A DNA stretch of 64,000 nucleotides from Chara braunii (GCA_003427395.1 BFEA01000011.1:3975366-4039365), one strand, 5' to 3'; positions 2,342-35,231 are shown, counted from the first letter of the stretch. The notes: a model not told the origin generated them from the letters alone. Numbers and translations are program-made.

Positions 2342-2549
2342 CGGGTCAGTGCTGAAGTTGCTAGGTGGATATGTCGTTATAGACACTCCATCTCCTTCCC
2401 CGAAAGTCTTCATGAGTTTTCGAAGTGTCGCCTGCACCACCTTTAGCCTGGTTAGGCCAGCCATCAATGGACCAATCGGGTCATCCATAGCCTTCCTCAA
2501 GTCGACGAGGATGGCAACATTCTTTCGCGGGGAAATCGCCTCTGTAAAC
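2342..2549 (-). CDS. Exon 5 of the alpha2delta/CACHD1-like gene (start of VWA domain); gene apparently continues leftwards
   Basis: tttcag|G completes the split Trp codon. Encodes FTEAISPRKNVAILVDLRKAMDDPIGPLMAGLTRLKVVQATLRKLMKTFGEGDGVSITTYPPSNFSTDP, then |GTAAGA. This fits the VWA beta1/alpha1/beta2 pattern. 208 nt. Confidence 0.88.
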
Positions 2550-2641
2550 CTGAAATATCACAAAAGGAAACAAAATGGGTTCAGAAGCAACGCACATGTG
2601 CGTGAATGGAAAGAAAAAGCAGGCGCACCCGAGTGCACAAG

Positions 2642-2687
<46 letters not shown>

Positions 2688-2702
2688 NNNNNNNNNNNNN
2701 NN

Positions 2703-2768
<66 letters not shown>

Positions 2769-4820
2769 CTTTTTGTTGAGGGGGGAGGAGGGGAACAATG
2801 CTCCAGTCTATTCGTGGGGAGCAACACATACAAGGAACTGGGCCCAGCATCTCAAATGACACCTCTTTTGAGTTATCAACTTCTTTTGTTTTCTTTTTTA
2901 AACGGGCTCTGCCTACTAGGAGGGGTGGTACAAGCAGCCTCCCCTAGTAAGCTCGTTGGTTGCTCCGTTCCATTGGTGGGGGACAGCACCTGCTGGGAAA
3001 CGGGTCCAGCATCCCATTACAAGATGGAGAACAGAGTAGGATTTGACCCAGCCCGCCAGCACTGATCACCCCAGAAAAGTGGGGCAGGGAAGTGATTCCA
3101 AGGTGACCTCTTCAGTCCTGCTACTGGGTGCCTGATTATTATCCTGTTTTTACTAGCACACCCTGATCACCGACCCTGAAGCTTTTGGATGAGAGAAGTG
3201 CCCTAATTCAGGGGCTTTCCTGATGATTCTGAGAAGACATGAAGGACTGAGAAGCCATGAAGAACAGGAGACCCCAACCCTTCAACCCTAAACCCTAGAC
3301 CCTGAGTCTCCTCACACTTGCTCTAAGCTGTATCGACTCCGGTTCACCAGGCACAGGGAAGAGGGTGGGAATAGGTCGGGGAAGTCTAAGAAAGGTCACA
3401 GTGATGTATAGAAGTGTCCAGCTTGGTCCAGTCGCAGAAGACAAGGCGGTAGTCCCTGATCATGTTCCCTTGGGTTCCCCCTTGTAGGCTTGTCCCCCAT
3501 TGCACTCCACTTTCCCAATCCTCCCCCCGTGACCCCCCCCAAGCCAGCTGTTACTGAACTGTTGGATGAACTAATGCATTTCAGGTCGGAGTGGCGGTGA
3601 TCAAGTTGTGTTGTCACCCCTTGCCATTGTGTTATGATGTCAGTTTGAACCTGTTGTTTGATAGTGTCTGTAAATTCAGGACCGGACAATCGCACTCCTT
3701 CCATTTGATGCGTGGAGCCTCGCCACCGCATGACCCAGAACATGGCACGTTGACCTGATTTAAACAAATTTATTGTGAATTCACTCGGCAGAGTCGGCTG
3801 GTCAGGGTGCCAAGTTTCACAAAGCAGAGCCAGCCAATCCCATGGCCAAGGGTGGGATGCCCCGAGCTGACTCCATATCCGATCCCACCACTGCCAGAGC
3901 CAATGGCCCCTGGACATTAGAGAAAGATGTGTTCCATTGTCTCAGGCATCTTCCGGGCTGGGAATGCGGTACTGTACAACCAGGGATAGACTAGCCCCCT
4001 CTGTTCCAGGGAAGTTTGATCGACAAGCCTATTGGGTTTGGCAGGCAGTGGTGGTCCACCTACTACTGAAGGGAGGTGAGTTTTGGCGGTTTTTGGCTTG
4101 ATGGTGGGAAACCATTTGATTGGTCGTGAGGACTCCTTACTGATGTTGAGGTGTTTCATCGAAAGGGCCTCCACCTGGTCCCGGAGGTTAATCTTGGGCC
4201 TGAGCATACAATAGGTGGAGTTCATTGTCAAGGTGTGCAGTGTGTGAGCGCAGGACTTACCTCGCCCAGCCGGGCTCGTCCAGATTCCGCTGGCCGGGTC
4301 AAAGGCCGGCTGGGAGATAGGGTATTGGGTTTAAGGGTCAGACAGCGGTTCCTTTGTAGCAGGATCCTGATTCTAAAAAGCTCAGTTTGTGGGAACCGGG
4401 GTCTCTTTTGGCTAAGAGTTTGTGGAGGGTGTAGTCATGCCAGAGCTCGAACAGGTTCAGCAATACCTTCCCATCTGGGTGTCTATCCACTACATTACCA
4501 ATCAGTTGGGGTTGATCCTGTATGGCTACCCAATCTCCTTCTTGCCGGGTGGGGCCCTTTCGAAGGATGCGGACACAGCCCAAGGGGATTAGGTCGCCAG
4601 GGGGACAAACCTACAAGGGGAGGAGGTACCGGTTGCTTGGGAGGCCGAGCGGCCTGGAAGTCACCGCCCAGGAGGCAAGTAGGCCGCTATATGAAGAGGT
4701 CGAGGGAAGAGCCCGGCCTAATTCTTCAGTGTGCAAGTTTGGCGACACGCTGTTGGAGCGCTGGCTGGAGGAGCGCTGGCTACTACAGCGCTGCTGGGAG
4801 GAAGAAGCCGGGAGCGTCCA

Positions 4821-4990
4821 CCTTGGCTACGGTGGAGCTCTACCGGTGGGAGGAGGAGGGAGAAAGGGACCAAGGAGGAGAGTGGCGGGGTACCTACCTT
4901 GGCTATGGTGGAGCTCTACCGGTGGGAGGAGGAGGGAGAAAGGGACCAAGGAGGAGAGTGGCGGGGTACCTACCTGGCTATGGTGGAGTC
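4821..4990. repeat. Tandem duplication of about 76 bp
   Basis: ggctayggtggagctctaccggtgggaggaggagggagaaagggaccaagg occurs twice. Confidence 0.9.
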
Positions 4991-5769
4991 GTGGACACCA
5001 TCTTCATCACCTTGATAGGCGCTGCATCCGGAAGGCCCCAGTTGGGGTAGTGCCGCACCAAGGAAGCTCGGGGCAGAGACAGGCATGGCGGCCTAATGAG
5101 CAGCAGCATAGCTGCTTNNNNNNNNNNNNNNNNNNNNNNNNNNNNNNNNNNNNNNNNNNNNNNNNNNNNNNNNNNNNNNNNNNNNNNNNNNNNNNNNNNN
5201 NNNNNNNNNNNNNNNNNNNNNNNNNNNNNNNNNNNNNNNNNNNNNNNNNNNNNNNNNNNNNNNNNNNNNNNNNNNNNNNNNNNNNNNNNNNNNNNNNNNN
5301 NNNNNNNNNNNNNNNNNNNNNNNNNNNNNNNNNNNNNNNNNNNNNNNNNNNNNNNNNNNNNNNNNNNNNNNNNNNNNNNNNNNNNNNNNNNNNNNNNNNN
5401 NNNNNNNNNNNNNNNNNNNNNNNNNNNNNNNNNNNNNNNNNNNNNNNNNNNNNNNNNNNNNNNNNNNNNNNNNNNNNNNNNNNNNNNNNNNNNNNNNNNN
5501 NNNNNNNNNNNNNNNNNNNNNNNNNNNNNNNNNNNNNNNNNNNNNNNNNNNNNNNNNNNNNNNNNNNNNNNNNNNNNNNNNNNNNNNNNNNNNNNNNNNN
5601 NNNNNNNNNNNNNNNNNNNNNNNNNNNNNNNNNNNNNNNNNNNNNNNNNNNNNNNNNNNNNNNNNNNNNNNNNNNNNNNNNNNNNNNNNNNNNNNNNNNN
5701 NNNNNNNNNNNNNNNNNNNNNNNNNNNNNNNNNNNNNNNNNNNNNNGGTACACTTAGAGTGGCGTAGTC

Positions 5770-5917
5770 TATCTACAAAAAAAAAAAAAAAAGGGAAAGA
5801 AAATAGGCCCCGGGACGAGGTTTGGCAGGCCCTGAACTGCCGGACAGACGGGGCCCGAACCCCCGATTGTCCAAGTGGGGGGGTGACCCCCTTCGAACGT
5901 TCAGGTCGGCAACCCTG
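5770..5917. mobile_element. One end of a hAT-like MITE inserted in LINE RT
   Basis: Ends in GGCAACCCTG (CAGGGTTGCC terminus) exactly where RT similarity stops. The other end is probably in the gap. Confidence 0.45.
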
Positions 5918-7834
5918 ATCTTTGATGTTTCTTCCTTTAATGTAACCTTTCTGGACCGGGTCTATAATGTCTCCAATGACTTCTATCGTGCAATTTGCGA
6001 TTGCCTTAGCGACCATCTTGTAGACCATTGTGAGGAGTGTAATGCATCGATAGTTTCCAATATTGGTTTTCTCGCCCTTCTTGTAGAGGAAAGTCAACAC
6101 CCCTTGGTGCACACCCATTTGCCCTGATAGCCAAACTGAGTGGTAGTAGTCCATTAGGTCTTGTGATAGGCTATCCCACAGGCCTTGCCAACACTTGGGA
6201 AGTCTGTCAATGCCCGGGGTCTTTTCCTCCTCCATCAGCATGAGGGTTGTCCAAACCTCCTCCTTAGAGAGGGGTTTGCCAAGTTCCTCTTGCTGCTGGT
6301 CAGTGAGGGGTTTTGTTATAGGGAGGAGGAAATCATTGATCTCTCGTGCTCGTTCAGGCTATGGGAGGTGTCTACACTGGATGTGAAAAGGGTCCGGAAA
6401 TTTTCCCTAGGAATTTGTGTGCTTGCTGCCGTCGATGTAACTAAGGGGTCTTGTTGTTGTCAGGGGTCGGGTTGGGCCTCAATGCTTGTCCTACCCGATC
6501 TGGCCTTTGTCATTGCAAAGAATCTGATGCCCATTTATCCTTCCATTTGGTGGCGCCGTCGTTTGCCATGGATGAGTGTACCCTGCCCTCGGTGTTCCAT
6601 ATGAGTCGGTAGTTGGTCTTCCAGTTCTTGGATGTTTGTAGCGAGTGCTGCCAACTTAGACACATCATCTAGGTTATCTTCCTGTTGTTGGAGGTGCTGC
6701 AAGCGCTGATGTAATTGCACATCTTCCAAGTGGCGATGTGCTGAAAGAAGCTTGGAGTATTCATTGCACTTGTCCTCGAGGTTAGTTTTAGATCTGTTCA
6801 CAGAGAGAATATATGTATTTCGTTCGTAGAAGTCTCAGGCTTGATCTGGGTTTCGTATGAAGGAGAGGATGGCCATGCGCATCGCATGATCAAGGTCGAG
6901 GAAGAGGCCTCGGGGGAATATTTCAGCTACCTGCAATGCCGTTGTAGCTCGTCTAATATTGGGATGAGGTCAATACGAGATTTAAAGGCCCCGTCTGTTT
7001 GGCTTTTGCGGCAACATGTGAACATGCGCTGGGTTGGGAATGACCTTCTGAAGGTGTGGTACAAATTGCGCCATTGGCAGAGGTATGCAATAATATGTTT
7101 GTTGGTTTCCACACATGAGGGACATGCGGAAGGGATTTGTCAGCGGTTCAACCGGTAGTCTGGGGCTGCATTGAAGTCCCCGGCCGTAATTATCGAGATA
7201 CCCACCGGGAGTTTTATTTTGATATTCTCAAAGAAGCATTGTCGCTCCGTTATCTCATTTGGACCATATACACACAGAATGTTGACCGCCTGCAATTCGA
7301 GCATGACAAGTGATGGACCCATCGACCTTCGTCGGGGTCTGCTGCCTAATTGAGTGGTTCTATCTTGAACCAGGGGGGGCCAGATGACCACCCTCGCACT
7401 CCCGGGCCTTCATGCATGTGCTCAATAAGATTGATAGGGACATATCTCTTTGTGGGTGTGGTTGTGCTCTGTGGTGTCCACTAGGTGGGTTTCCTGTATT
7501 ATTAGTAATAACCAGGATATTCACAATTCCATATATATCCAAATTTCGAAGAGGGAATCAAGCATATCGGTGGGGAACCTACAGTAGGGGATTGTCTTAA
7601 GGGATCCCAGTAGGAGGGGTGTTAGTAGACAGACTCTGGTGGAGGAAATCATTGGGGAACCTGCAGTAGGGGGGGGGGGCTATCTGAGGGGGGATCCTCC
7701 AAGGTAGGATGGTCTGGGTCCCATAAATTAGTTGTTGACTGTAGATAGGTACCTGTCGTGGGTCCAGAAACCGACCTAACAAGGAACTGGTCCACTATAT
7801 AAGCCATCATTTAAAAACTAAAAGAAAAAGAAAT

Positions 7835-8367
7835 AACTGCGCGGGTGACTGCTGCACAGTTTCAAATTCGCAGGAATAACAGTCCACTGCAAGCTTGGGC
7901 GAAGACCAGTTCGAAACTTCAAGAAAAACAGTAAGGTGGGAACACGACGGCCTACCGGTTCAGTAATTGGCAAAAACGGGAGGTGGCGGTCGTGTTTTTT
8001 TTTTTTTTTTTTTCCTTCCTTGTCTGCAACTTTTTTTTTCTTTTTTTTTTACTGCGCCCGCTTATGCCACGGCCGCGCTGTCTAGGCCACACCCGTGGCT
8101 GGGCCATGGCCGAGATGTCTTGGCCACGCCCATGGCTGGGCCACGGCCAAGATGTCTAGGCCACACCCGTGGCTGGGCCACCCGAGATGCCTAGGCCACG
8201 CCCGAGATGCCTAGGTCATGCCCGAGATGCCTAGGCCACAACCCTGGGGAAACGAGCCAAGACTGGGAGGGCCTGCTACGGGTGTGGCCGTGGCAGACGC
8301 GAAAAAAAAAAAGTCGAAGGTGCGAAAAAAAAAGTCGAAGGCGCAAAAAAAAAATTCAAAGGCACAG

Positions 8368-8404
<37 letters not shown>

Positions 8405-8569
8405 CAACAACACAACCGCCACCGCCCTTTTTTGCCAATTACTGAACCGGTAGGCCGTCGTGCTCCCACCTTACTGTTTTTCTTGCAGTTTCGAACTGGT
8501 CTTCGCCAAGCTTGCAGTGGACTGTTATTCCTGCGAATTCCAAACTGTGCAGCAGTCACAGGCACAGTT
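7835..8569. mobile_element. Foldback element with about 160-bp TIRs and internal GGCCGAGATGTCTNGGCC repeats
   Basis: 7835-7995 is the inverted repeat of 8410-8569. Confidence 0.85.
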
Positions 8570-9169
8570 GTCTCAAAGAAAAATTAAAAAATCCCTTTGG
8601 GGAAAACAAAATGAAGAGAGCGCAGCGTCTGAGCATGTCAGCGTTGATCCTCCCGCGATGCGCCTACCCTGCCAGGCACCACAGCTGTGTGAGAGCCATG
8701 GCGGACAGTGTCTTGGTGTAGCCTATCCCTTGAGTGGGATAGGGAGTGCCTTTGCGCTCGTACACCAGGGCATCCTGGCAGCCCTGTACCGGACCTTCAT
8801 ACCATACCATACCCTCATACCTGATGAGATCCCGACACCAGAGGAGCCATCCTCCCCTCAAGCCTCAAGCTCGAAAAGGGGGGCTCCTTTCTCACCACCC
8901 AAGAGGAGTGTGGTTCACCTCCACTCACCTCTTCACGCCAGGATGGCAGCAGCGTCAGCGGAAGCAGTGGGAGGGCTTGCGACGGCAGTGGGAGTGCTGC
9001 CGACACTGCCAAGATACAACCTGATACACTATACATTTGGCTATACTGATGATTCCATCTTTCACCTCTGCTCAGACGACTCTCCAAGGTGGATACATCA
9101 ACTTTTGTCATCAACTAGATTAAGGTTGGCAGCAGCATCGGTGGGAGCAGTGGGAGAGCTTGCTCAGCG

Positions 9170-10473
9170 CAGCTGTCTTTTAGTCGTATTTTAGGGTACC
9201 ATCTTTCTGTGGTATGTTGTTGTTTCCTGAATTCCGTGAGAAATGAAACTCGTATTGTTCCTTTCGGTTCTGCTACATGCATCACCGTTAGTGTTTTGTA
9301 TTTAGAAATATGTAGGGTAAATAGTTCGGACATAGTAATGGGCTATAGAATTGTGGGTGGGTAGGATTTTGGTTTATATTGGTTTTGAGGTTGAAATGTC
9401 TGCAGTGGTTTAGGGTTAAACTCACGGGACTACCAGTAAAAGTACAGGGAGGGCTAGGAGTTGTTCCAGGATTAGGAGACCAGAATTGCTGATATAGCAT
9501 AGTCTTTTATATTTTTTCTATACTAATCATCATCATCCTTAGCATCATCATCATTAGTATGATTATCTCACAGTTTACACAGAAATTCATCATCATTATC
9601 ATCATCGTCATATGAGGGACGCTGAGCCCGGTTCTCAGCATGTTCTGTTCGGTCACTCGGGGTAGACTGTGACGACCCCGGCCTTAATCTTCTTATTGGT
9701 AATATCAGCCTTGGGCATTAGGCCCGTTTAAAATTAAAAAAAAAAAAAAAAAAAAAGTGTCTCGAGGAGCAGTGAGAGTGCAACAAGAGGCAGTGGGAAC
9801 TCTACTGGTTTGGTGGTAAGAGAGACCCGGTAAACAGCAAACTTGAGTTGTATCCGATGGGTGCGTGGTGGGAACCCGTCTAGGCAACTCAGGCTCCTTA
9901 CAGTGTTTTGGACAGTGATGATGAGAGGGCAGCCTTGACACTGTTGACGGACATGTTGCTATCTGTTTGGAGTTCGAGAAGGGTGGGGTTATCTATATTT
10001 GTGGCTATATTCACTATGGATTTCGGTAGTAAACATTGACCTCTTTTTCTAGTTGTTTTCTAGGCTAATATAATTTATGTGCTGCTGTCTTTCAGCCGTA
10101 TCTTAGGGCACCGCTATCCCTCGGTATGTTGTTGTTTTCTGAATTTCGTGGGAAGTGGAATTTGTATTGTTGCTTTCGGTTCTGTTACTTGCATCACTTT
10201 TAGTGTTTCGTATTTAGAAACACGTACTGTAAACAGTTTGGACATAGTAATGGGTTATAGTATTGTGGGTGGGTAGGAATTTGGTTTATATTTTTTTTGA
10301 TGTTGGTATGTTTGCAGTGGTTCAGGGTGAGACTCGCAGGATCTGGAAGATATGAGAGACCCGGTGAAGAGCAAACTAGAGTTGTATCCATTGGGTGCGT
10401 GGTGGGAAACCCATCTAGGCAACAAAGGCTCTTTACAGTGTTTTGGACAGTGATGATGAGAGGGTAACCCTAA
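9170..10473. repeat. Diverged local duplication (9170-9430 matches 10080-10340; 9820-9930 matches 10355-10465), with a poly(A)-tailed insert ending 9756
   Basis: Direct similarity seen by eye. Confidence 0.7.
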
Positions 10474-10616
10474 TGCTTATTCTTCCTTCCCAGCTCCTAG
10501 TCATTGAGCCTATAGGCTACTTTTAGTTTCTAAGGTTTAGCCGTTTATTCGTGCCGAGTTAGGGAACTGAGCATGGTTCGATAGTAGTTTAGTATCGATG
10601 AGCAGCACTCCAATGA

Positions 10617-10617
<1 letters not shown>

Positions 10618-10651
<34 letters not shown>

Positions 10652-11197
10652 GAAAAATAAGCTCCATCTATTGGTGGGGAGCTGCACCTGCTGGAAACCG
10701 GGACCAGCGTCCCTTACATCATGAAAAAACAACAGATGAAAACCCTTGGCTGGAAACCGGGTCCAGCGTCCCCTTCTTACTGACTTTTCAATCCAATAAT
10801 AGGGCCTATTCTATTCTACCAATGTTTGAAGGAAGAGTCCTACTAGTCAAGATGAAGCCTCTTCAGTCCGATATCTGACCGCCTGTTGGGAAGAATAAAA
10901 CCTAGCCTCCTCCTAATAGGACCCTCTCCAGCCTGCTCCTATGCTATGTCCCCCCCTCCTCCAAACCACTCAAGGTCCACCAGTGCTAATGGGGCAGGTG
11001 GGAAGGGATCGGCAAACAATTCGGGAGCTCTCAAAAAGGCCCCTGGTTGAATATCTAACCAATTCTGAAAGTTAATCTGGTAATCCCGTTTGATCCTCCC
11101 TTTCTCCTCTTCCTCCCCTGGCCATATTATATCCCCCAATTTCTCGCCAGCTGCATCCCCTAGCCATTCTAGTTGGAACTTTCGTATTCCTTGTTTG
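10618..11197 (-). mobile_element. LINE 3' end with poly(A) tail
   Basis: T-run of about 30 nt at 10618-10647. Shares the GCTGGAAACCGGGTCCAGC 3' motif with other LINE ends. Trp-rich C-terminal ORF remnant. Confidence 0.65.
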
Positions 11198-12540
11198 NNN
11201 NNNNNNNNNNNNNNNNNNNNNNNNNNNNNNNNNNNNNNNNNNNNNNNNNNNNNNNNNNNNNNNNNNNNNNNNNNNNNNNNNNNNNNNNNNNNNNNNNNNN
11301 NNNNNNNNNNNNNNNNNNNNNNNNNNNNNNNNNNNNNNNNNNNNNNNNNNNNNNNNNNNNNNNNNNNNNNNNNNNNNNNNNNNNNNNNNNNNNNNNNNNN
11401 NNNNNNNNNNAAAAAAAAAAAAAAAAAAAAAGGGAAATAAGTTGGAAATAACGAGAAACTAATGCGCTATACGAAACATCCCCTATAGGCTACAACCCTT
11501 CAAAGCTCATCGGTCTCATGAGCCATTGTCATCACCAACAGGCTCATTCTTTTTACAGTTTTGCTGCATCTGGCCCATGCAGTCGACAACACTGATCGAC
11601 TTTCACGTCTGAAGTGAAAATCGGCCCTTGCGGCTTTCTTTCTCCCCTATTGTCTTATGCAGAATGTTGGGGTTCCCTGCTATCTGATCTCGACTAGGTA
11701 TGAGGCGGAAGATCCACAACATCTTTGGGTCACTTGGCCAAATGCCGAAGTGGTATGGACACAGTGGCATCATTTACATCTTGCCCCTTGGACATGGGGT
11801 GACCTACGATGTGAAAGTGCGATTTTGTTAAGCACAATATTGACTCCCCTCGTTAACCCACGAGCGTATGTGTTTGAAACTCTTCGCACCATGATATTGT
11901 GGCCTCTCTGGATATGATATTGTGAGGGCTGGGACCACTCCCTCCAAACAACTAGTTTACCATGGCATCAGGCGAACTCTGAGACATTATTTGCCTGGAT
12001 TGGTGGAAGTGAGTCAGTAATGTTGTGACTTTGACAGTCGCTTTCATGTTTCAGAAAATATGGGCGGCCTGTTCTGCGTTGGTCACCAATGATGGTTGTG
12101 TGGCTGTGCCTGTGGAAGGTCTAAATGGGCACTGAGTGTGTCGAGTGTGTATCCTGGCTGCAACTGTGCTGCGGTGGGCTGAATGTCATGACCGGTATGG
12201 CCTCGCTTTAGAACACCGTGTCATAGTTGAAGTGGTAAAGGGTTCGATTCCGTCTGGTGCAGATTGATCCTGGCAATATACTGAACAGAATGAGCTGGGT
12301 GGCATGGACAACTGTGTATCCTGTTCACTGAAAATACAGAGTGTTTGAGGCTATGAAACCCGGGGGCAGGCCGGGGGACGGGAAGGGAAGTGGGAAAAAA
12401 ACAAAGAAAAGCAAAGTCTGCCCAGCAAGTCCGGAAAATGAGTGCCCTTTTTCACCAAAAAAAAAGAACAAAAATCGAAAAAGGCCTTTCAGTTTCCAAA
12501 TTTTGAATTTAATCACAAAGATGGAATTGTGGAGACTCAC

Positions 12541-12599
12541 CAAGGCCGTTGGCGTGGATCATACTCCTCACAATTGTATGGGTATGTTCCTGGAGCTTG
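12541..12599 (-). CDS. Exon 4 of the alpha2delta/CACHD1-like gene (YDPRxRPW motif)
   Basis: gctcgcag| QAPGTYPYNCEEYDPRQRP-TG |GTGAGT. Phase 0 in, phase 2 out, 59 nt. Confidence 0.88.
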
Positions 12600-14586: not shown

Positions 14587-14630
14587 ATAAAAGTGACATG
14601 AACGTACTTACGTCTTCCTTCTTTCTTTAC

Positions 14631-14701
14631 CGTGTCATCCTGGTGCAGGGGCCACGCTAATATTCTCTGTTCTCTGTACCGTTCCAATTTCAACGGATGT
14701 C
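14631..14701 (-). pseudogene. U6: U6 snRNA fragment (truncated at both ends, ACAGAGA duplicated)
   Basis: Minus strand GACATCCGTTGAAATTGGAACGGTACAGAGAACAGAGAATATTAGCGTGGCCCCTGCACCAGGATGACACG matches the plant U6 core. Confidence 0.9.
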
Positions 14702-15601
14702 AAACAGTCAAACTGATTGTCATACAATTATCAGATCTGAGATTCCAGGAAGTGAAGTGAAGTAATGCAGGACACCTGAAGGCAGGTATAAAAAGATTCA
14801 CAGATACAAGAACAGCCTTTGAAATACCTGTCGGTATCTGGATGTCAAGGTTAAGTGGTGGCGGAAGTGCGTTTGTGGGAAGAAAGCTGCAGTCTTGGGC
14901 AGAGTGTAAGGCGAACACCCCCTGAGGAGGACTGCTGGGCAGCAGTTGAAAATGTGGCGTCGGGGAGCCATACCTGTTCTCATTCGGTTTGTCATTTATC
15001 ATTTTCAATGGAATTTAGTTCTTCTTCGTTCCAAGCAGAGACAATCATATCTATTGCCGATCTAACTCGAGATTTGTTTCACATACTTGCGCCGCAATTG
15101 TCGCGGCTATGTGTCTCGCGTTCTGGTCAGCTGTGCACTGGCTCGTGCTGTTTTTCTCTCATCTATCCAGATAACTGGACTGTGTTAATGCTTGCTTCCT
15201 CATGTCTGAGCACTCTGCTTTTTTCACAGCATGAGCACTTGCTTTTTTTTACTGCATGAGCACGTGCTTTTTTTACTGCATGAGCACGTGCCTTCTGCAC
15301 GTATCTGGACATATTCAACAGACTAACTAACTCTGTTGCCCGGGACCAAAAAAAATAAAAGTAAGACTCTGACTCCCTGCCATCCGTCCACGGCTGATCA
15401 TCCATCAGACAAGTTGTAGGGGTTCTATCCTTTTCTGATGGACAGACACCCTCCAGTGTTTTTCAGGGAAAAAAAGGCTTGCATGCATGCATCTCTTTGT
15501 AAGAACTCTTTCTCCAAAAGGGTCAGTGAGAGAGAAGGAAAAAAAAACAAAAACAAGACAAAGTAAAACAAAGAAATGGCTTTAAAAAAGGGGACCCTCA
15601 C

Positions 15602-15785: not shown

Positions 15786-15819
15786 CTGGTTCACAAAAAA
15801 AGTAAATAAATCAGAAAAC

Positions 15820-15857
15820 CTGTCTCTTATACACATCTAGATGTGTATAAGAGACAG
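15820..15857. other. Nextera mate-pair junction adapter (artefact)
   Basis: CTGTCTCTTATACACATCT+AGATGTGTATAAGAGACAG next to a gap. Confidence 0.98.
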
Positions 15858-15984
15858 GTTTTGGACAGTGATGATGAGAGGGTAACCCTAANNNNNNNNN
15901 NNNNNNNNNNNNNNNNNNNNNNCCCTTCTACCCTGCGACAAAAAAACAATTGCCAGAAAAACTGCCTCTGAAACCATTCACACA

Positions 15985-16018
<34 letters not shown>

Positions 16019-19866: not shown

Positions 19867-20514
19867 CTGGCTAGCACCCCGTACGCGTACGCGTACGTAC
19901 TCCAGCGTACACATACGAACCCAAAATCGTGTGTACACGTACGTAAAAAAAAAAAAAAANNNNNNNNNNNNNNNNNNNNNNNNNNNNNNNNNNNNNNNNN
20001 NNNNNNNNNNNNNNNNNNNNNNNNNNNNNNNNNNNNNNNNNNNNNNNNNNNNNNNNNNNNNNNNNNNNNNNNNNNNNNNNNNNNNNNNNNNNNNNNNNNN
20101 NNNNNNNNNNNNNNNNNNNNNNNNNNNNNNNNNNNNNNNNNNNNNNNNNNNNNNNNNNNNNNNNNNNNNNNNNNNNNNNNNNNNNNNNNNNNNNNNNNNN
20201 NNNNNNNNNNNNNNNNNNNNNNNNNNNNNNNNNNNNNNNNNNNNNNNNNNNNNNNNNNNNNNNNNNNNNNNNNNNNNNNNNNNNNNNNNNNNNNNNNNNN
20301 NNNNNNNNNAGACAAAAGTTGTTTGAAATGTCATTTTGCATAACATACTTTGTTTTCGGATTTTTTCGATGTTTTTTTTTTTTTTTTTTTTTTTTTTTAA
20401 CGTATTCCCACGTATGGGAGTACATGTATGCGCGTACGTGTCGCGTATAGGAATACGTTTACGCGTGTACGCCTAATCCGCGTACACGTACGCTGTGCTA
20501 CAAAAAAAAAACAG
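19867..20514. mobile_element. Related MITE with GTACGC subterminal repeats (gapped)
   Basis: TAGCAC...GTGCTAC ends with palindromic CGTACG arrays. TSD unclear. Confidence 0.55.
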
Positions 20515-23741: not shown

Positions 23742-23818
23742 AAAAAGCTCGGACCATTTCTCGATTTATGTGTGTCATCCTCGCGCTGGGGCCATGCTAA
23801 TCTTCTTTGTATCGTTCC
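23742..23818 (-). pseudogene. U6: 5'-truncated U6 snRNA copy followed by a (GTT)9 tail
   Basis: Minus strand GGAACGATACAAAGAAGATTAGCATGGCCCCAGCGCGAGGATGACACACATAAATCGAGAAATGGTCCGAGCTTTTT, then (GTT)n. Confidence 0.92.
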
Positions 23819-24112
23819 GAAGGATGAGGAAGGGTCGAAGCACCATGGCAACCACCAGACAGCCAAGCGGCCCAGGCAAAATCAGACGTATGTTATTCTA
23901 TCATCTGACCGTATCTGGATTTGAACTTAGGCCTGTATTTCAACAGTTCAGAGGAGACCTTAGGCCTGTATTTCAACAGTTCAGAGGAGAACTTAGGCCT
24001 GTATTTCAACAGTTCAGAGGAGTACCAACTGATCCAGGGCAGTTGGTTCGTTCACCGCCGGTGCCAGTTCCCAGCACCCGACCACACAGCGGCGCGCTAA
24101 GCTGTTAACAGC

Positions 24113-24315
24113 TCCTGCTATCCTGTGGGAACTTTCAGAGGAAACCAGCTACTAGACAGTTCGATTAGTCTTTAGCCCCTATACCCAGTCCGACGAATGA
24201 TTTGCACGTCAGTATCGCTGCGAACCTCCACCAGAGTTCCTTCAGGCCTTTCCCTGCTCAAGCATAGCCCACCATCTTTGAGGTCCCAAAGGACATGCTC
24301 ATACGCATACCTCTC
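24113..24315 (-). pseudogene. Diverged 25S/28S rRNA fragment
   Basis: Plus strand ...GCTATCCTG..ACCAGCTACTAGA..GTTCGATTAGTCTTTAGCCCCTATACCC..GATTTGCACGTCAGTATCGC..CCTCCACCAGAG is the antisense of a conserved LSU core region. Confidence 0.9.
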
Positions 24316-25666
24316 ATAGCAAATTGTGAGAGGCGGACAGTGCACTCGCAATTGCACTGTCCCTATCAAACTCCCCATCTGGCTCTAGTAGAGTTTGACT
24401 CGGGCCTGTATTTCAACAGTCCATGGGTGTAAACTCCGCTAGGCTCTTGGGTTACATGACCAGCCCCGAAACCAGTTGTAGGGGCCATGCCAGTCTTCTC
24501 TGTATCATTTCAATTTAATGGATGTCCTGAAGGACTACCTCGCGAGGTGACGGCCTTGAGAATCTGATATCATCGCCGAACTGGCCAACCGTCGTTACCA
24601 GCCCCGAAAACGGGACTAAAATAATGAAACAAAAATAGGTAAAGCAATAAAGATAGGTAAGAAATAAAAAAATAGAATATGAGGTTGCATAGAAAAAGAA
24701 CTGACGAGGGGATAGTGGGGGTTGTTGGTACGTCCCTGTGCCCACCGATTGGGTCCGCGGCCAGGACCTGGCGACAAAACCAAGGGGAATAGCCCTGCCG
24801 GGCCCTCCACCCCTCAGTCCTTTTTACGCAGCTCCTTCACTCCCTTGTCGCCAGGTGCTGGTCTCGATCCCCGAACCTGCCTGCTGAGAGTCCCATATCG
24901 TAACAAATAGTCCTAGGCCCAAAGCCGAGATTAGCCCCTGCAAAATTCGCAGCCAGGAGGCTGCGCTTGTGTGGGTTCCATTTTCGTCGTTTCATGTTCT
25001 TTCTATTTTCGGTAAGATCGTGCAGTACAGCTTGGCTAGGACGTGTTCGTTTGGGGTCTCCGACAGCAGAAAATAGGGTCCGGTCGCAGTCGTCCCTAAG
25101 ACCGGTTGTAGGGCAGGTTATCTTGTTGAGGTCGTTGCAATTTAGTATAGGTCGCCGTCCGTTGTTTCCCTTTTGAGGGATAGAGTTTTTTTCCGTTGCA
25201 AACTGGGGGCGGGCGATATGGGTCTGCGCAGGCTATTTGGGTCTGTTTTGTTTTTTTTCTCTTCTACTGCATCTCCCAAGAAATACAGTATGGAGGCATT
25301 CTGCTGTTTACCGCGACCAAGTAACGAAATCTAGAACGGACTGCCCTGCCTTGTTGGCAGGGCTTACTAAGGAAAGGAAAGAAAAGAAAAACGTACTGAC
25401 TTTCAGAAAAAAAAAGAAGAAAAAACGTACTTACCTTTGCCACGAGAGCTGTGGAAATCAAGGGCCTTGCTCCACTACCGACCAAATGTGCAAAATGAGC
25501 ATGAATCTTCTGGTAGAACATAGGTAGATGCACTGCTAGTAATTTAGAGCTTGAAATGCCCTTTTTCCTGGCCGCGTGTGGGGTGGTACAGCCCTCAGCA
25601 GCTTGCTCTTCGTTTTTCCGTATTTTTTTTCCCCCTCTCCTGCGATCGAAGAATCTGGGCTCCATC

Positions 25667-27251: not shown

Positions 27252-27440
27252 ACCACTAGTACCTTTCCCGGCTATAGACACCGACCCTAAAATTGGCCTG
27301 CGCTTCGGAAAAAAAAGAACCACGTGGACCTCCTTTTGGCTGGCGCCACCAGCCATTTTGGTCCGGTACCGCGACCCCTCAAAATGTGGCCATGAAAGAG
27401 ACACATATTTGTTTTTCAAGCGGGGACAAGTACTGGCGGT
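27252..27440. mobile_element. TTAA-family MITE with a different interior; a further copy starts at 27445
   Basis: TTAA|ACCACTAGTAC...GTACTGGCGGT|TTAA|ACCACCAGTAC. Confidence 0.75.
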
Positions 27441-27637
27441 TTAAACCACCAGTACCTAGCGCTTGTTAAGGCCCGTGGCTCAGCCTACTGGTATCCCAAA
27501 CCTCCGAGCCTCGAGCTACCGGTAGGTAGACATCGGAAGAAAAAAAAGACAAAAAAAAAAATTGACACTCGTCTGCCAAAGAAAAAGAAATTGAAAAACA
27601 AAGACGCCCGTTTTGCACTTTCCATCTTTGGGTCGTG

Positions 27638-27691
<54 letters not shown>

Positions 27692-28120
27692 AAATATATT
27701 GCACTGCAAATTTAAACGAGAATGAATCTTCTGCCTCCTGTGTGGAAGATTCATTCTCATTTTGAGCATGAACAGCTGTTCTTATTCACTCTGGTGTTTT
27801 TCCTCTACTCCAGGACTGGTGGGAGGAGGATGTCATTGTGTAGACACACGTTCAGCATAAGGAGTCTCTTCCCCCGTTTTCCCCCGTTTGTGGATGCTAG
27901 AGCCTGCAAAGCTCCGAGTCTACTTCTGTAGAGCTCCCTCCCTCCCTAGGCTCCCTGCTGCCAGTATCTCTTGCAGGCTCCCCTGGTGGAAACAAAAAAC
28001 TTGCAAAGTTGCGATGAGCTCTACTTTTTTGTGTCATAGGGGATTCAATAGCATCCCGTCGACCTATAAGTAGTATAAAACATTCCTCAAGTTTTTGACA
28101 CAATCACAGTGACTTAGTAC

Positions 28121-28322
28121 CTGATGAATGGCTCCGCAAACGAGGTGAGCAGTTCTGCACAAGGTCGACCAGGATTACTTGTGTTCAGCACGCCGCCTGG
28201 CAGACAATTCTTTGTATTTGTCTTAAAGTTCCCGACACACTCGAACGATGTCGTCGATCCAGTGTAGGAGCACGCCAGCCTGCCCCGCCGTGTAGTGTTA
28301 AAATAGCAATCCTGCAAAGTGA
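28121..28322 (-). CDS. Exon 2 of the alpha2delta/CACHD1-like gene (Cys-rich extracellular segment)
   Basis: Acceptor ttttttgggtgcag| is phase 1 and matches exon 1. Encodes VTLQDCYFN...AEPFIR. Donor AG|GTACTA is phase 2. 202 nt. Confidence 0.75.
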
Positions 28323-29340
28323 CTGCACCCAAAAAAGATAGGCAAAACACAGTCCAGGGGCAAGCTCCTCCTGCCTAGCATGGGTACTGCATATCTGGCT
28401 GTCGTTGATCTCCTCAATCTACAGCCAGAAACACAGAATCCATGCTAGGTAGGAGGACCTTGGCCCTGGAATGCAAATCAAATGTGAGCAGTCAGTAAAA
28501 ACATAAAAAGTCCTTTTTGCTTATTCCAGAGGCAAAAAAGAAGGGCAAAGTCCCACTACCCTACAGTTTTTTTTTTTTTTTTGCTTGAAGAGAAGGTTGG
28601 AGCAGTTTTCTTTTCAAGCAGGTGTGCCACCCCCTGCCTTCCCCTCTGAAAATCCATGTCATGGTCAGTCATTCTCTGGCTACGCCAGTCGTGTGGTAGG
28701 ATAGGTGGGTTGCTGTAACAGTTGTAGGGATAGAGCAGTGGTGGTCCTGGTGGAGTCTGTGGAGAGCTGTGCACAGGCGGTGAGCCGGAGAGGCTGACCC
28801 GGCACAGCTCGGCGTCATGGTTGAGTGTATCACTCAGGTGTGTGCAAAATCGGACAGTTGTTTTAACCAGATTATGTAAGAGACTTCGACTTTCCCCATT
28901 TCTGCTTGGTCTCTGTCAGTCATGTGCATGGCCAGGTGATGGCCTTGGCTGCGAGGGTCGGATGTGTATCTGGTTTTGGTTTTGTGCTTGCGGAATGGTC
29001 CCTATAAGGAGACAAAACAAGTTGACTGAGTGTGTGAGCTAAGTTGAATAACTGGTCCGGGAGTGCATCTCACTCATTATACTCTGACACTCTTTCTCTT
29101 ACATATGAAATGACATTGTATGGATGATTGATCGAGTCCCACACTCGCATAATTTGATGACGTATGTCGGTGGGTGCATGTACGTGTGATCCCAGAGGGA
29201 TTAATAATCTTGCATGTCAAATTATCTTCGGCGCTTGCTACTTTACACTCTTCCTCTTGCACAAAAACTAGCACTGCAGGGGGTGTGTTATAAGGAAAAA
29301 AAAAAAAAAAAAAAAGGGATAACTGCTCCCGGGTCACACT

Positions 29341-29850
29341 TCAAGTTCAAAACGGCCAAAAAAACACTTAATGGTAACATCCTCGTCGTCCAAGTTCAAA
29401 ACGGCCAAAAAAACACTTAATGGCAACATCCTCGTCGTCCAAGTNNNNNNNNNNNNNNNNNNNNNNNNNNNNNNNNNNNNNNNNNNNNNNNNNNNNNNNN
29501 NNNNNNNNNNNNNNNNNNNNNNNNNNNNNNNNNNNNNNNNNNNNNNNNNNNNNNNNNNNNNNNNNNNNNNNNNNNNNNNNNNNNNNNNNNNNNNNNNNNN
29601 NNNNNNNNNNNNNNNNNNNNNNNNNNNNNNNNNNNNNNNNNNNNNNNNNNNNNNNNNNNNNNNNNNNNNNNNNNNNNNNNNNNNNNNNNNNNNGCCGAGA
29701 TGTCTCGGCCACACCCCAGATTGGCCACCGCCGAGATGTCTCGGCCACACCCCAGATTGGCCACGGCCGAGATGTCTCGGTCACACCCCAGATTGGCCAC
29801 CGCCGAGATGTCTCGGCCACACCCCAGATTGGCCATGGCCCAGATATATC
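29341..29850. repeat. Repeat of about 50 bp (29341-29444) and 36-bp tandem repeat (29694-29850) around a gap
   Basis: GCCGAGATGTCTCGGCCACACCCCAGATTGGCCAC x4. Confidence 0.9.
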
Positions 29851-29875
29851 GGCCAAACCCCGGCGTGGCCCGACC

Positions 29876-29912
<37 letters not shown>

Positions 29913-32235
29913 CGTTTCAGCCGCCGCGCGGCCATAACGACGGATTAAAAAAAAAAAAAAGACAAAAGTGCCTGTTTGGAACAGGCACCATGTGTATAAC
30001 GCGGGCCACTGTTATTATTGCCGTTTTGAACTAAGGTCGGGACGAACCTGCGGATGACTGTTTTTTTTGCCCATTCAAAACGTGGGTTGTGACCCACGAG
30101 CCGTTGCCCCAAAAAAGAATGGTATGTGCCATGTGGTGGTGGGGGTTTTGTGTCAGGATGAAGACTTCCCACCTAGATAGTGGACACACATATAAACTCA
30201 CCACCTACATTTCTACGTCTATGCAAGGTAATGGAAAAATGCCAATGTTTGAACTTCGAATTGGTCTGCCATAGCAGCCTTCCTGACTTCCCCACTGCAG
30301 CTGAAGATGCTATATACTCAGGCTGCCATGCGGATGTGAGGAGTGCGCTGTTGCAAGCTGATCTGATTCAAGTTCACTTCTATAAAGCTCGTCATTTTGG
30401 TGGGGATGGGTTTGTTCTGATTGATTGTTTGGACTCCCCTCACCGGAGTCACCGTCCTCAGGTAATCCTTCATGATTGTCTGGACTCCCCTCACCGCCCT
30501 CAGATAATCCCTCAGCACATGCCACATGGAACCACCGCTATAACTGTCGTTGGTGCAAAGCAGGGAACTCATGCTTGTGGCGATGATTGGCACTGCGACA
30601 TCAGGGCACACTGTGCTTTCTGAAAATCAATGCCTGTAATAGGAAAGCTTCTTTATCCCCATTCCCCCGCCTCCACCGCCCTCCGGTGACGACTGATCTG
30701 ATGGAGGCTACGCCAGCGGAATATCTCACCCCTTCTTTTTTAATTAGAACGTAGCGGAGCCCCTTTTTGTCTTCCAGGCCCGATGAACCTCCCTTCCCCT
30801 TCTTTTTCTTTGGCCAATCCCTGCCCCTTCTTTTTCTTTGGCCAATTGGTGACTGCCCATCAGCTGGTCCTTTCTCCTCCCCAATCTAGTGAAAGCCTTC
30901 CCTCCTATGCTCCTCAGAGGCCCTCGTATGCTCCCAAACTATCTCTTCTCTCCCTTCTAAACTATTTAGGTATCCTTTGCACCTCGGACTGATGCAAGAA
31001 ATTCCGGTCCTGTCTCGGATTTCAACCCCCTTGCCTAAAATCCCCGGCTGTGGCCCATACTCTTAATATAGTCGTAACCCACACGGGTATGAAATACTAA
31101 GAAATGCTGCATCGGGCGCGAGGTTGTGCAGCACAGGCCACTTGATACCCACATGTTCCATTTCTGATCATGACCATGATAGATGAATGGCCTGAAATAC
31201 TGTCCGTGCAACTCCAGCAAGTGAAGTGGCCTGAAATTATACTGTCCAGGCAACTCCAGAACAAGGTTCAAATGGCAACTTGAAGGTACAGAGAGCTGAG
31301 AGAGGGTTAGAATAGGGGGCCCAAAAGGTCCACATGTAGAGAAAAAACCTTCTCGGTGTCGAGTTTAGTTTATCGGGCCTAGCGTCCGGGTTACTATGCA
31401 TGTTTTTTTTTTTTGGGTTCCCCTCCTTTTCNNNNNNNNNNNNNNNNNNNNNNNNNNNNNNNNNNNNNNNNNNNNNNNNNNNNNNNNNNNNNNNNNNNNN
31501 NNNNNNNNNNNNNNNNNNNNNNNNNNNNNNNNNNNNNNNNNNNNNNNNNNNNNNNNNNNNNNNNNNNNNNNNNNNNNNNNNNNNNNNNNNNNNNNNNNNN
31601 NNNNNNNNNNNNNNNNNNNNNNNNNNNNNNNNNNNNNNNNNNNNNNNNNNNNNNNNNNNNNNNNNNNNNNNNNNNNNNNNNNNNNNNNNNNNNNNNNNNN
31701 NNNNNNNNNNNNNNNNNNNNNNNNNNNNNNNNNNNNNNNNNNNNNNNNNNNNNNNNNNNNNNNNNNNNNNNNNNNNNNNNNNNNNNNNNNNNNNNNNNNN
31801 NNNNNNNNNNNNNNNNNNNNNNNNNNNNNNNNNNNNNNNNNNNNNNNNNNNNNNNNNNNNNNNNNNNNNNNNNNNNNNNNNNNNNNNNNNNNNNNNNNNN
31901 NNNNNNNNNNNNNNNNNNNNNNNNNNNNNNNNNNNNNNNNNNNNNNNNNNNNNNNNNNNNNNNNNNNNNNNNNNNNNNNNNNNNNNNNNNNNNNNNNNNN
32001 NNNNNNNNNNNNNNNNNNNNNNNNNNNNNNNNNNNNNNNNNNNNNNNNNNNNNNNNNNNNNNNNNNNNNNNNNNNNNNNNNNNNNNNNNNNNNNNNNNNN
32101 NNNNNNNNNNNNNNNNNNNNNNNNNNNNNNNNNNNNNNNNNNNNNNNNNNNNNNNNNNNNNNNNNNNNNNNNNNNNNNNNNNNNNNNNNNNNNNNNNNNN
32201 NNNNNNNNNNNNNNNNNNNNNNNNNNNNNNNNNNN

Positions 32236-32503
32236 AGGAGACAGCTAGCTCAACGGAAAGTGGCGAGGGTAGGGGGAGTAGTATTCGAGAGAAAAGATTT
32301 ACTTCTGCTTTTTGTTGTAAGAAAAAGCAACAATAGTCTCTATTGCCTTTTTTATTAAAAACGGACGGCTAAAGGAGACAGCTAGCTCAACGGAAAGTGG
32401 CGAGGGTAGGGGGAGTAGTATTCGAGAGAAAGGATTTACTTCTGCTTTTTGTTGTAAGAAAAAGCAACGATAGTCTCTATTGCCTTTTTTATTAAAAACG
32501 GAC
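32236..32503. repeat. Tandem duplication of about 137 bp at a contig edge
   Basis: Two near-identical copies. Confidence 0.9.
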
Positions 32504-34552
32504 AACCGTTGTCGCGAACAGTCACACAGCGTCGAAAACCAACGTTGACCTAGCTCAACGGAGCTAGTGGGGACAACCAGTCCAGGGAACCGGGACATAG
32601 GAGTGACCAGCCCAGGGAACCGATGATAATACCTCAAGTCCAGGGAACCGGGACATTGTACAGACTCGATGGGACAACCAGTTTGTGCTCTTGGGGAAAA
32701 CTTCCAGACGACGGCCACCGTCGCCCTGTTGCCCCCAGGCTGAAGAAACGATTCGTGGTGCTATCCTTACGGCTCTTCGGAGGATGTTCCACCGTTTTTG
32801 CTACAGTGTGACCTTACGCGGCCTTTTTGGGACTAGTGGCGGCACTCCGATGTCCCGGTTCCACATATACAGACTCTATGGGACAACCAGTTTGTGCTCT
32901 TGGGGATAGCTTCCAGACAACAGCCACCGTCGCCCTGTCACCCCCGGGGAGGGGAGTTTTCGATGGACTGTGTACGACTGTGTACGGCTGCCTTGCCACT
33001 GGGAGCCTTCCCCACTTTGGCCTTTTCTGACTTCTTTTTGTGATAGTTTTGAATCTGTGATACTGACTGAATGTGAATCTAAGACCTTGTGTACATATGT
33101 TACCATATGTACGAATAGGTGGGTGGGGTGGAGTCTGGTGGGTGGGGTGGAGTGTAAGACGTTGTATATGGGTTGGTGACTGCAGTAAATAACTGGATGG
33201 TAGGAGTTTGGACAGTTACTAGATAGCAGAGGGTGGCTTTTACATGATTGTGGCCTTTTTCCATTGCATTGAAGTGTGGTTTGAGTAGCTGAGTGTTTGG
33301 ATATCATGCAGATAGGATAAGGTTGCTTCAGAATCTATAGGATGGTAGCTCTTTTTGTCCCTTCCGAACGCTTGGTTTTCCTTTTCTTTCATCTTCGCAA
33401 CATTGCGCCCTGTGGCGTGGGGGAGGCCGGGGTCTCAGCGGCTGGATGGCTGTGGTTGGGGATGGGACTGGCCGGGAGTGCCTTTCTCAGCTCCGTGCGC
33501 GGTCGCAGCATTCATGTGAGGGTCGCTGGGAGGGTCGCTGGGCTCGGTTCCCGGTTTTAATTGAGAAGTTTTTTTTCTTAAAAAAAAAAAGAGGACGAGA
33601 AAATAAATATTCTTGTTCGTAACACTACTATTTCTTTCACTATATTCCCAGCATCAATCCGCGGCCACACGGAATCGAGGAAAAAAATAAATAAATAAAA
33701 AATCGAGGTGATCTCGGCCATAACAGCCGGATGCCTTACCACTGCAACTGGGACGAAACTAAACAAACACTGGCTACTGGATGGGAACCCACCGACACAC
33801 ACACACACACACACACACACANNNNNNNNNNNNNNNNNNNNNNNNNNNNNNNNNNNNNNNNNNNNNNNNNNNNNNNNNNNNNNNNNNNNNNNNNNNNNNN
33901 NNNNNNNNNNNNNNNNNNNNNNNNNNNNNNNNNNNNNNNNNNNNNNNNNNNNNNNNNNNNNNNNNNNNNNNNNNNNNNNNNNNNNNNNNNNNNNNNNNNN
34001 NTTTGCAAATAATAATAATAATAAATAATAATAATATTAAATAATATTAATGATAAATAATATTAATAATACGGTTCGAGTTTGAAAGCAGTTTTTAGCA
34101 AGGAAGGAAGCTAAGCCTTGCACATAAATCAGAACTCTGAATGCAAAAAATAAAAAGTAAAAAAGGAATAACTCCCAATGCATTCGCAAGGGCGAAACGT
34201 TCTTCCCATGCCCTTCTCCGGCCTTGCTTGACAATTACAACTCCAAATATAAAAAAATATATTAAAAAAAAAGAACTGCCAATGCATTCGCAAGGGCGAT
34301 ATTCTCTGGGTTAAGCACATATTATTTTATAAAACACCAAAATCAGAAGAGGAAGAGGGCGAAGAAAATTGCAAATTTTTACACTAGTCGATGGCCTTGA
34401 GGTATTATCATCGGACTAACCAGCCCAGGTACTACTTTCGCAAAGAAGCCAGCAATTCTTTCTCATATACGATATCTCCTGTCCGAAAGGGAAGGGGGGG
34501 GAGGGGGGGGGGGGCGAATCCTGTCCCCAAGTACAATAGCATCAAACACCAG

Positions 34553-34765
34553 CTGGCCTAGCTCAGTTGGTACACTCAAGAACTGTTGAAATAAACACGC
34601 AAGTTCGAGAACCCAGAATCCAGATGCATTCAAATGAGTGAGAATAACCGTCTTCGAGTGAGGACGGTAGCTCAGTTGGTACACCCACGAACTATTGAAA
34701 TACAGACCCAGGTTCGAACCCAGATAAGATACAATCAAAAGTCATTGAGTGAGAATAACTGTTGT
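34553..34765 (+). mobile_element. Two tandem tRNA-like SINE heads (CTGTTGAAATACAG family)
   Basis: TAGCTCAGTTGGTAC...GGTTCGAACCC. Relatives at 46735-46830, 24385-24445(-), 23905-24040(-), and a split copy at 47910/50475. Confidence 0.7.
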
Positions 34766-34948
34766 AAATGAATCAACCTGGGGCCGGTCAATTCAAAGAT
34801 GATATCTAAATTCAGTTCTTTTTTCTTTTTTTTTTTTAATGTATCAAAGAGGAGGAAGGACAAGTGGGTGGAGCTCAGCTTGGAGGAGCTGGGCTGCGGA
34901 AGCACCCGTTACAGATGTCCATGAAACGTGACGCGAGAGACAGAGAGA

Positions 34949-35002
<54 letters not shown>

Positions 35003-35231
35003 CGCAGGCTTTTTCATCGTTCTCCTGCGCACAATTTGCTAGGTAGCGGACGCGCTTCTCGGCGCCGTCGATGAAACTCGACATATCGAGGCTCGAGCTG
35101 TTTAAGGGGGGTAAGGTTCCCGCCACACCAGCGGAGGTGTCTTGACCCTTCACTGCAGGTTCTCCGAGTAGCAAAGCAATCGCCAAAGCCAAAATACACG
35201 AAGCTGCCGCACCCATCGCCATGATCTTCAT
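35003..35231 (-). CDS. Exon 1 of an alpha2delta/CACHD1-like Cache-VWA protein (signal peptide)
   Basis: Reads MKIMAMGAAASCILALAIALLLGEPAVKGQ... (hydrophobic signal peptide) through ...AQENDEKAC. Ends G|GTAAGT (phase 1), 229 nt. The exact start Met is uncertain. Confidence 0.8.

Follow-up and report, generated by a model that had tools for sequence, protein, structure and literature searches.

The window analyzed here is a 64,000-nucleotide (nt) stretch of the genome of the charophyte Chara braunii (GCA_003427395.1, BFEA01000011.1:3975366-4039365), with positions counted from its first letter. On the minus strand, between positions 35231 and 2342, it contains five short exons that most likely represent the true 5' end of the gene CBR_g5640 and encode the N-terminal module of a secreted or extracellular protein of the alpha2delta/CACHD1 type. 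In the public annotation, CBR_g5640 is a 381-amino acid (aa) "hypothetical protein" (GBG60467.1) from a 7.28-Mb scaffold of Chara braunii, and this gene model lacks the first two exons and part of the third one. The exons are separated by introns that contain assembly gaps and repeats, and the gene extends beyond the left edge of the window (Table 1).

Exon structure of the 5' region of CBR_g5640

The five exons total 882 nt, that is, 294 codons with no stops. All introns are bordered by GT and AG, with a pyrimidine tract preceding each AG, and the phases are chained in the order 1, 2, 0, 2; the split codons are those for V, R, and W, the latter completing the RQRPW sequence. Upstream of the start ATG at 35231, at a distance of 81 nt, there is a TAG in the same frame, without an intervening ATG. 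The exons, splice sites, phases, and motifs were all found where the original prediction, made from the nucleotide sequence alone, had placed them. The same holds for the lengths of the four complete introns, those of introns 1, 2, and 4 being estimates because intron 3 alone is free of gaps.

Exon 1 comprises the start codon and a hydrophobic N-terminus resembling a signal peptide (about 35231-35145; hydrophobicity is strong at residues 8-22, with a mean Kyte-Doolittle value of 2.7); a single N-glycosylation sequon and the earliest cysteines are found here as well. The segment encoded by exon 2 is Cys-rich, with a total of five cysteines, and has two sequons. The portion of the first Cache module that precedes the signature motif is encoded by exon 3, with the peptide ending in GQMYYGTMAGTFSIFPGK, and exon 4 codes for QAPGTYPYNCEEYDPRQRP plus two bases of the W codon. 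The Y-x4-R-x-W motif itself maps to 12563-12541 in exon 4, and base 2549, in exon 5, completes the W. The VWA domain begins in exon 5, which encodes its strand 1, helix 1, and strand 2; there, the equivalent of the MIDAS (metal ion-dependent adhesion site), DLRKA, is located at 2503-2489. Altogether, the exon peptides contain five N-x-S/T sequons and 10 cysteines, which, together with the hydrophobic N-terminus, fits the expectation for a secreted protein.

The gene has been described previously as hidden. This is the case for exons 1 and 2 and for exon 3 in its 5' part, none of which is present in GBG60467.1, but not for the rest of exon 3 or for exons 4 and 5, which are already included in that model. 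Homology searches were run with single exon peptides or with public proteins; in an exhaustive phmmer search, the exon 5 peptide proved to be 100% identical to residues 32-100 of GBG60467.1 (E 3e-36). The public protein begins at an internal Met of exon 3 (MAGTFSIFPGK) and reads K/QAPG...RPW/FTEA...STDP/ETVQ (exon boundaries marked by slashes), so that the exon 3/4 and 4/5 junctions as well as the exon 5 donor are exactly as predicted. No tblastn match to residues 101-381 of this protein was detected in the window; these residues are therefore encoded outside it, and the gene continues leftward.

The 5' exons are supported by a paralogue from the same species, CBR_g32551 (GBG81560.1, 512 aa). 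In a tblastn search of the window, this protein matched all five exons in order, with residues 70-121, 131-185, 184-243, 252-272, and 273-345 corresponding to exons 1, 2, 3, 4, and 5, respectively. Exons 1 to 3 were compared with the paralogue by pairwise BLASTP (a MAFFT alignment, A1, was set aside, with the rows for exon 1, exon 2, and another paralogue, CBR_g5633, misplaced). Significant alignments were obtained for exon 1 with residues 70-120 (E 2e-4), for exon 2 with residues 131-183 (E 4e-4; the four cysteines in the aligned block coincide), and for exon 3 with residues 196-243 (E 9e-11). Manual reading of the sequences shows that the fifth cysteine of exon 2, a C-x5-C pattern spanning the exon 1/2 junction, and an F[IV]R[FY]P pattern spanning the exon 2/3 junction are common to the two proteins as well. 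The conservation of these cysteines and junction residues supports the exon 2 acceptor at 28323; an alternative AG nearby, at 28312, would break the frame.

All eight runs of N in the span are intronic and touch neither an exon nor a splice site (two of these, at 31432-32235 and 33822-34001, were absent from the initial listing of gaps), so that continuity of the reading frame across a gap is not at issue. The order and orientation of the exons across the gaps are backed by the colinear matches to CBR_g32551 and by GBG60467.1, which joins exons 3, 4, and 5. Compared to CBR_g32551, no residues are lacking between the exons and, accordingly, no exon appears to be concealed in a gap. Untrimmed Nextera mate-pair junction adaptors (a 19-mer followed by its own reverse complement) are present at 15820-15857 and 61372-61409. 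Each of these lies about 35-100 bp from an N gap, and therefore, the stretch from the adaptor to the gap may be of chimeric origin rather than local sequence; the first one separates exon 3 from the gap at 15892, with the exon 3 acceptor on its safe side.

Table 1 Exons and introns of the CBR_g5640 5' region (positions in the window)
Feature	Position	Strand	Description
Exon 1	35231-35003	minus	229 nt; phase 1 at 3' end; GT donor 35002-35001
Intron 1	35002-28323	minus	nominal 6680 nt; N gaps 29445-29693, 31432-32235, 33822-34001
Exon 2	28322-28121	minus	202 nt; phase 1 to 2; AG acceptor 28324-28323, GT donor 28120-28119
Intron 2	28120-15786	minus	nominal 12335 nt; gaps 15892-15922, 19960-20309; U6 copy, large subunit (LSU) rRNA fragment, Nextera adaptor
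Exon 3	15785-15602	minus	184 nt; phase 2 to 0; AG 15787-15786, GT 15601-15600
Intron 3	15601-12600	minus	3002 nt, gap-free; U6 retro-copy at 14604-14713
Exon 4	12599-12541	minus	59 nt; phase 0 to 2; splice sites and public-model junctions
Intron 4	12540-2550	minus	nominal 9991 nt; gaps 2688-2702, 5118-5746, 11198-11410; reverse transcriptase fragment and dispersed repeats
Exon 5	2549-2342	minus	208 nt; phase 2 to 0; GT donor 2341-2340
Intron 5 (start)	2341-1	minus	later exons (residue 101 of GBG60467.1 onward) beyond the window

Relationship to alpha2delta-1, the Cache motif and the metal site

Evidence on the identity of the encoded protein comes from searches of the PDB, in which the assignment to the alpha2delta/CACHD1 type, with the first half of dCache_1 followed by an inserted VWA domain, was upheld. 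When GBG60467.1 was compared by phmmer with 177,635 PDB sequences, the 13 best distinct sequences all belonged to alpha2delta-1 (E 6e-6, with no composition bias). The alignment covers residues 18-271 of the Chara protein and 222-457 of alpha2delta-1 and takes in the VWA domain together with the motif before it and the strand after it: it starts at PYNCEEYDPRQRPWF, opposite YDVRRRPWY, and ends at RWARRYADAFDMGNITTLVMP, after the whole VWA domain, with the post-VWA W..Y.DA..G strand falling within the match. A profile built from Chara family members (alignment A2) also retrieved alpha2delta-1 as the sole family from the PDB (E 1.3e-7), the next best hits reaching only E 0.47-0.63 in the searches with GBG60467.1 and the A2 profile. 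CBR_g32551 produced a weaker alignment with alpha2delta-1 over the same motif (E 0.022), and the nearest language-model feature clusters were VWA together with VWA_N, from alpha2delta fragments (score 0.93). No relevant match in the PDB was found by phmmer with the exon 3 and exon 5 peptides alone, and there was no significant direct sequence match to CACHD1. Judging by these comparisons, the homology to alpha2delta is significant but distant.

Searches for relatives in other species were less informative. A word search with the exon 5 peptide, CBR_g32551, and GBG60467.1 yielded Chara proteins only, but its length window excludes full-length relatives, which makes it of little use for other species. 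In the exhaustive phmmer search, the exon 5 peptide detected three Chara proteins and, outside Chara, a single spurious match at E<=0.001, to a Calx-beta repeat protein; with a query this short (69 aa), the shortage of matches beyond Chara is weak evidence.

The Chara protein shares with animal alpha2delta-1 (CACNA2D1; PDB 8HLP chain F and 7MIX chain D) the signal peptide, the pre-VWA signature Y-D-x-R-x-R-P-W, the SP[RK].. sequence and the first VWA strand (ILVD) that follow the motif after a few residues, the position of the VWA domain as an insert in the first Cache module, and the post-VWA strand. It differs from alpha2delta-1 in the MIDAS (DLRKA/P/F as opposed to DxSxS/T/D), in an 8-residue insertion after strand 1, and in the Cys-rich N-terminus, which has no Pfam VWA_N match; the identity between the two proteins is about 20-25%.

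The amino acid-binding motif of dCache_1 domains consists of YxxxxRxWY and Y[x27-34]D, and in alpha2delta, the inserted VWA domain comes between these two halves; the N-terminal one, YxxxxRxWY, lies within the region that Pfam calls VWA_N, and the eukaryotic versions of dCache_1 have uncertain boundaries (PMC8915833). The interpretation of YxxxxRxW in this locus as the first half of the dCache_1 motif agrees with that published definition. In CBR_g5640, the first half is present as Y-DPRQ-R-P-W-F, encoded by exon 4 and the first bases of exon 5. The paralogue CBR_g5633 contains a counterpart of the second half: its sequence continues as ...RRYEDAFDMGNITTLVMPVFRKTGHLIGVAAMDV, with 29 residues between Y and D, inside the published x27-34 range, and this continuation (...LVMPVFRKTGHLIGVAAMDV, that is, Y-x29-D) mirrors PVFN...LILGVMGVDV of alpha2delta-1.

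In the HMMER alignment with alpha2delta-1, only one of the five MIDAS residues, the first D, is retained: DVSGS is replaced by DLRKA, T by P, and the D of TDG by F; the equivalent sequences in the paralogues are DLTND and DLRRG. The motif is intact (DxSxS...T...D) in alpha2delta-1 and -2. Given that alpha2delta-1 holds the first extracellular loop of the channel via the MIDAS, the destruction of this site speaks against binding to a channel in the alpha2delta-1 manner, whereas CACHD1 modulates channels even though its MIDAS is disrupted (PMC6231325).

These observations bear directly on the possibility that CBR_g5640 encodes an auxiliary subunit of a Cav-type Ca2+ channel that is involved in the characean action potential and promotes trafficking and gating similarly to alpha2delta-1, by contacting the pore subunit extracellularly. 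The nearest solved relatives are, indeed, exclusively alpha2delta-1, the host is an excitable charophyte, as had been surmised, and a classic excitable cell of the plant lineage at that, and the case of CACHD1 demonstrates modulation of Cav channels without an intact MIDAS (PMC6231325). However, the residues through which alpha2delta-1 grips the channel loop are reduced to the first D. Furthermore, the dCache_1-VWA combination is widespread in eukaryotes and is fused to kinases in streptophytes (PMC8915833), so that homology does not imply association with a channel. We found no literature linking Chara braunii to alpha2delta, and a search of the literature on a Chara Cav channel yielded nothing usable. 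With the MIDAS lost, a channel-accessory role of this kind is possible but distinctly unlikely.

The Chara family and the condition of the gene

CBR_g5640 belongs to a small, diverged Chara family that consists of at least four loci (CBR_g5640, CBR_g5633, CBR_g32551, and CBR_g49453) and has very long, repeat-bearing introns. CBR_g5633 is encoded on the same scaffold and is 68% identical to CBR_g5640 over the common part. For comparison, we used the region BFEA01000011.1:3,507,592-3,540,173 (hereafter, L001). Exon 5 and its paralogous exon at L001:6053-6259 are separated by 22.7 synonymous and 15.3 non-synonymous changes, with a ratio of non-synonymous to synonymous substitution rates (dN/dS) of 0.156, which, albeit on the basis of only 69 codons, indicates purifying selection on exon 5 since the duplication. 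L001 also contains a long terminal repeat (LTR) retroelement of the Ty3 type at about 22.6-32.2 kb, flanked by direct repeats at about 22.6-23.4 and 31.4-32.2 kb and inserted directly after the CBR_g5633 exon coding for PVFRKTGHLIGVAAMDV. The public model of CBR_g5633 opens with 235 aa that bear no relation to the family and probably result from mis-annotation.

Several observations weigh against the interpretation of CBR_g5640 as an alpha2delta/CACHD1-type gene. First, of the three Pfam domains by which the original prediction was to be verified, VWA_N and dCache_1 are not recognized, and the score for VWA is too low. There was no match at E<=10 to VWA_N (PF08399) for the exon peptides, GBG60467.1, the CBR_g32551 protein, or their sub-ranges, or to dCache_1 (PF02743), and no Pfam match at all at this threshold for any exon peptide alone; residues 1-275 of GBG60467.1 match VWA (PF00092) with 18.7 bits (E 0.0022), below the gathering score of 23.8. 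Second, the AlphaFold model built from a 6-row alignment is poor, with a predicted local distance difference test (pLDDT) score of 44. The top three Foldseek matches of this model are alpha2delta-1 chains, but because of the low confidence of the model, they are only a hint. Third, the final residue of the first motif half is F instead of Y, and although the Y of the second half can be located in GBG60467.1 (RRYADA, aligned to NVYLDA), the CBR_g5640 model lacks the exon that carries the D. Fourth, all public models of the Chara family are fragmentary, and one of these is fused to a Ty3-type element. Fifth, a stop-containing sequence located beside the LTR element (L001 31165-31368, minus strand) is 49% identical to residues 260-320 of GBG60467.1. 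Because the public protein after approximately residue 272 resembles this sequence, the 3' end of the model is probably wrong, and the similarity suggests that the C-terminal 110 or so residues are repeat-derived rather than encoded by genuine exons. Finally, ligand binding and signalling by the CBR_g5640 product are purely inferred.

The weak VWA signal in Pfam, unaccompanied by Cache or VWA_N, could be taken to mean that the gene encodes a generic secreted VWA protein, in which the likeness of YDxRxRPW to the Cache motif is a matter of chance. Such an explanation is extremely improbable: the searched PDB set includes many VWA and integrin I domains, and yet, alpha2delta-1 alone was matched; the alignment extends past either end of the VWA domain, into the two Cache half-segments; and CBR_g5633 contains the alpha2delta strand PVF...G[VI]..MDV.

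Another possibility is that the exons are relics of an alpha2delta-like gene that has been split by transposon insertions and encodes no complete protein. The fragmentary state of every public family model, including the retroelement chimera, the apparently transposon-derived 3' end of the public model, the loss of the MIDAS site, and the very long, repeat-bearing introns (the CBR_g32551 gene spans about 200 kb) all are compatible with decay. Nevertheless, all five exons are open, with canonical splice sites and agreeing phases, and the cysteine spacing and the junction residues have been kept in comparison with a paralogue that shows only 29-38% identity. Moreover, the dN/dS value for exon 5 points to purifying selection, and fragmentary models are to be expected, given the many assembly gaps and the very long introns. 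On balance, we consider it unlikely that CBR_g5640 is a decaying or non-functional member of the family, and favor the interpretation of the five exons as the 5' end of an alpha2delta/CACHD1-type gene.

The introns themselves have been portrayed as transposon-filled, which is only partly borne out. In intron 4, there is a degenerate, sub-threshold reverse transcriptase fragment (5747-6358), and dispersed repeats occur in the region of about 7.8-10.7 kb. Apart from the U6 small nuclear RNA copy in intron 3 (minus strand), intron 2 harbors another one at 23743-23846 (minus strand) and a 270-nt LSU rRNA fragment at 24145-24416 (minus strand); these pieces look like retroposed fragments of RNA genes. 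Overall, about 15% of the non-N intron bases are repeated, as measured against just 96 kb of comparison sequence.

The window also contains, immediately upstream of exon 1 and in the same orientation, an uninterrupted, intronless ORF of 969 aa (39580-42489, minus strand) with a GTP cyclohydrolase I domain (residues 376-533, E 6e-56) and several single N letters inside; the lack of introns sets it apart from the long-intron genes around it. Further along, at 43768-45741 (minus strand), there is an ORF of the long interspersed nuclear element (LINE) type, in which an endonuclease/exonuclease/phosphatase domain is accompanied by the beginning of a reverse transcriptase.

Affinities with Cache proteins and possible function

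Proteins that combine a dCache_1 that binds amino acids (dCache_1AA) with a VWA insertion have been reported in Archaeplastida, where none were found in angiosperms and where, in some Streptophyta, they are fused to Ser/Thr kinases (PMC8915833); this non-animal eukaryotic class includes forms with a single dCache_1 (Gumerov et al. 2022, PMC8915833). CBR_g5640 resembles this class in the host lineage (Archaeplastida/Streptophyta), in the interruption of dCache_1 by VWA, and in the N-terminal half of the amino acid motif. No kinase or second Cache module is visible in the window or the public model; likewise, no kinase domain was detected in the public proteins of CBR_g5640, CBR_g32551, and CBR_g5633, all of which are incomplete models. 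The published green-lineage class is most naturally the home of CBR_g5640. Because this class was described in 2022 (PMC8915833), the Chara gene joins a known class rather than defining a new system.

Compared with CACHD1, the Chara protein has the same alpha2delta-type Cache-VWA architecture and, similarly, a disrupted MIDAS (PMC6231325); the difference is that, in CACHD1, the intact amino acid motif belongs to the second dCache_1 (PMC8915833), whereas in Chara, the motif of the first module is largely kept. A more remote resemblance is to bacterial dCache_1 chemoreceptors (PctA and the Vibrio methyl-accepting chemotaxis protein 6IOP), which share the core [YF]G..G.....P......YDPR.RPW[YF]..A that precedes the ligand pocket; the local match to 6IOP_A at the motif is weak and not significant (E 1.7). 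The bacterial dCache_1 domains, in contrast to the Chara protein, lack a VWA insertion and have transmembrane helices at their flanks.

Taken together, these comparisons suggest a protein in which a signal peptide would be followed by a short, helical, Cys-rich, glycosylated segment, then by the first half of dCache_1, ending in YDPRQRPWF, and then by the inserted VWA domain. The latter is probably a scaffold rather than a cation-bridged clamp on a partner. In the most likely mechanism, the split Cache module would close around a small ligand bearing a carboxylate or an amine, for example, an amino acid, with contacts provided by the Y, R, and W located before the VWA domain and by the Y...D pair located after it. 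The signal would then be passed to the C-terminal half of the protein, which may comprise either a second Cache module and a membrane anchor or a Ser/Thr kinase, as in some streptophytes.

A variant of this scheme, in which the MIDAS-less Chara family senses ligands outside the cell as an accessory of the Ca2+-permeable channel of the plasma membrane that sets off the characean action potential, appears very unlikely; if true, it would mean that amino acids or similar cues from outside are coupled to excitability in the lineage that is sister to land plants.

Regardless of the function of its product, CBR_g5640 is an example of how very long, gap-ridden introns fragment gene models in Chara. 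The present analysis provides a corrected 5' structure for an alpha2delta/CACHD1-type gene of this alga, including the signal peptide, the Cys-rich segment, and the first half of the Cache module. The family to which this gene belongs is small and diverged, and the metal site has been lost in all its VWA domains. The encoded ectodomain is a concrete candidate that can be cloned and tested in work on characean excitability and on the evolution of Cache sensors.

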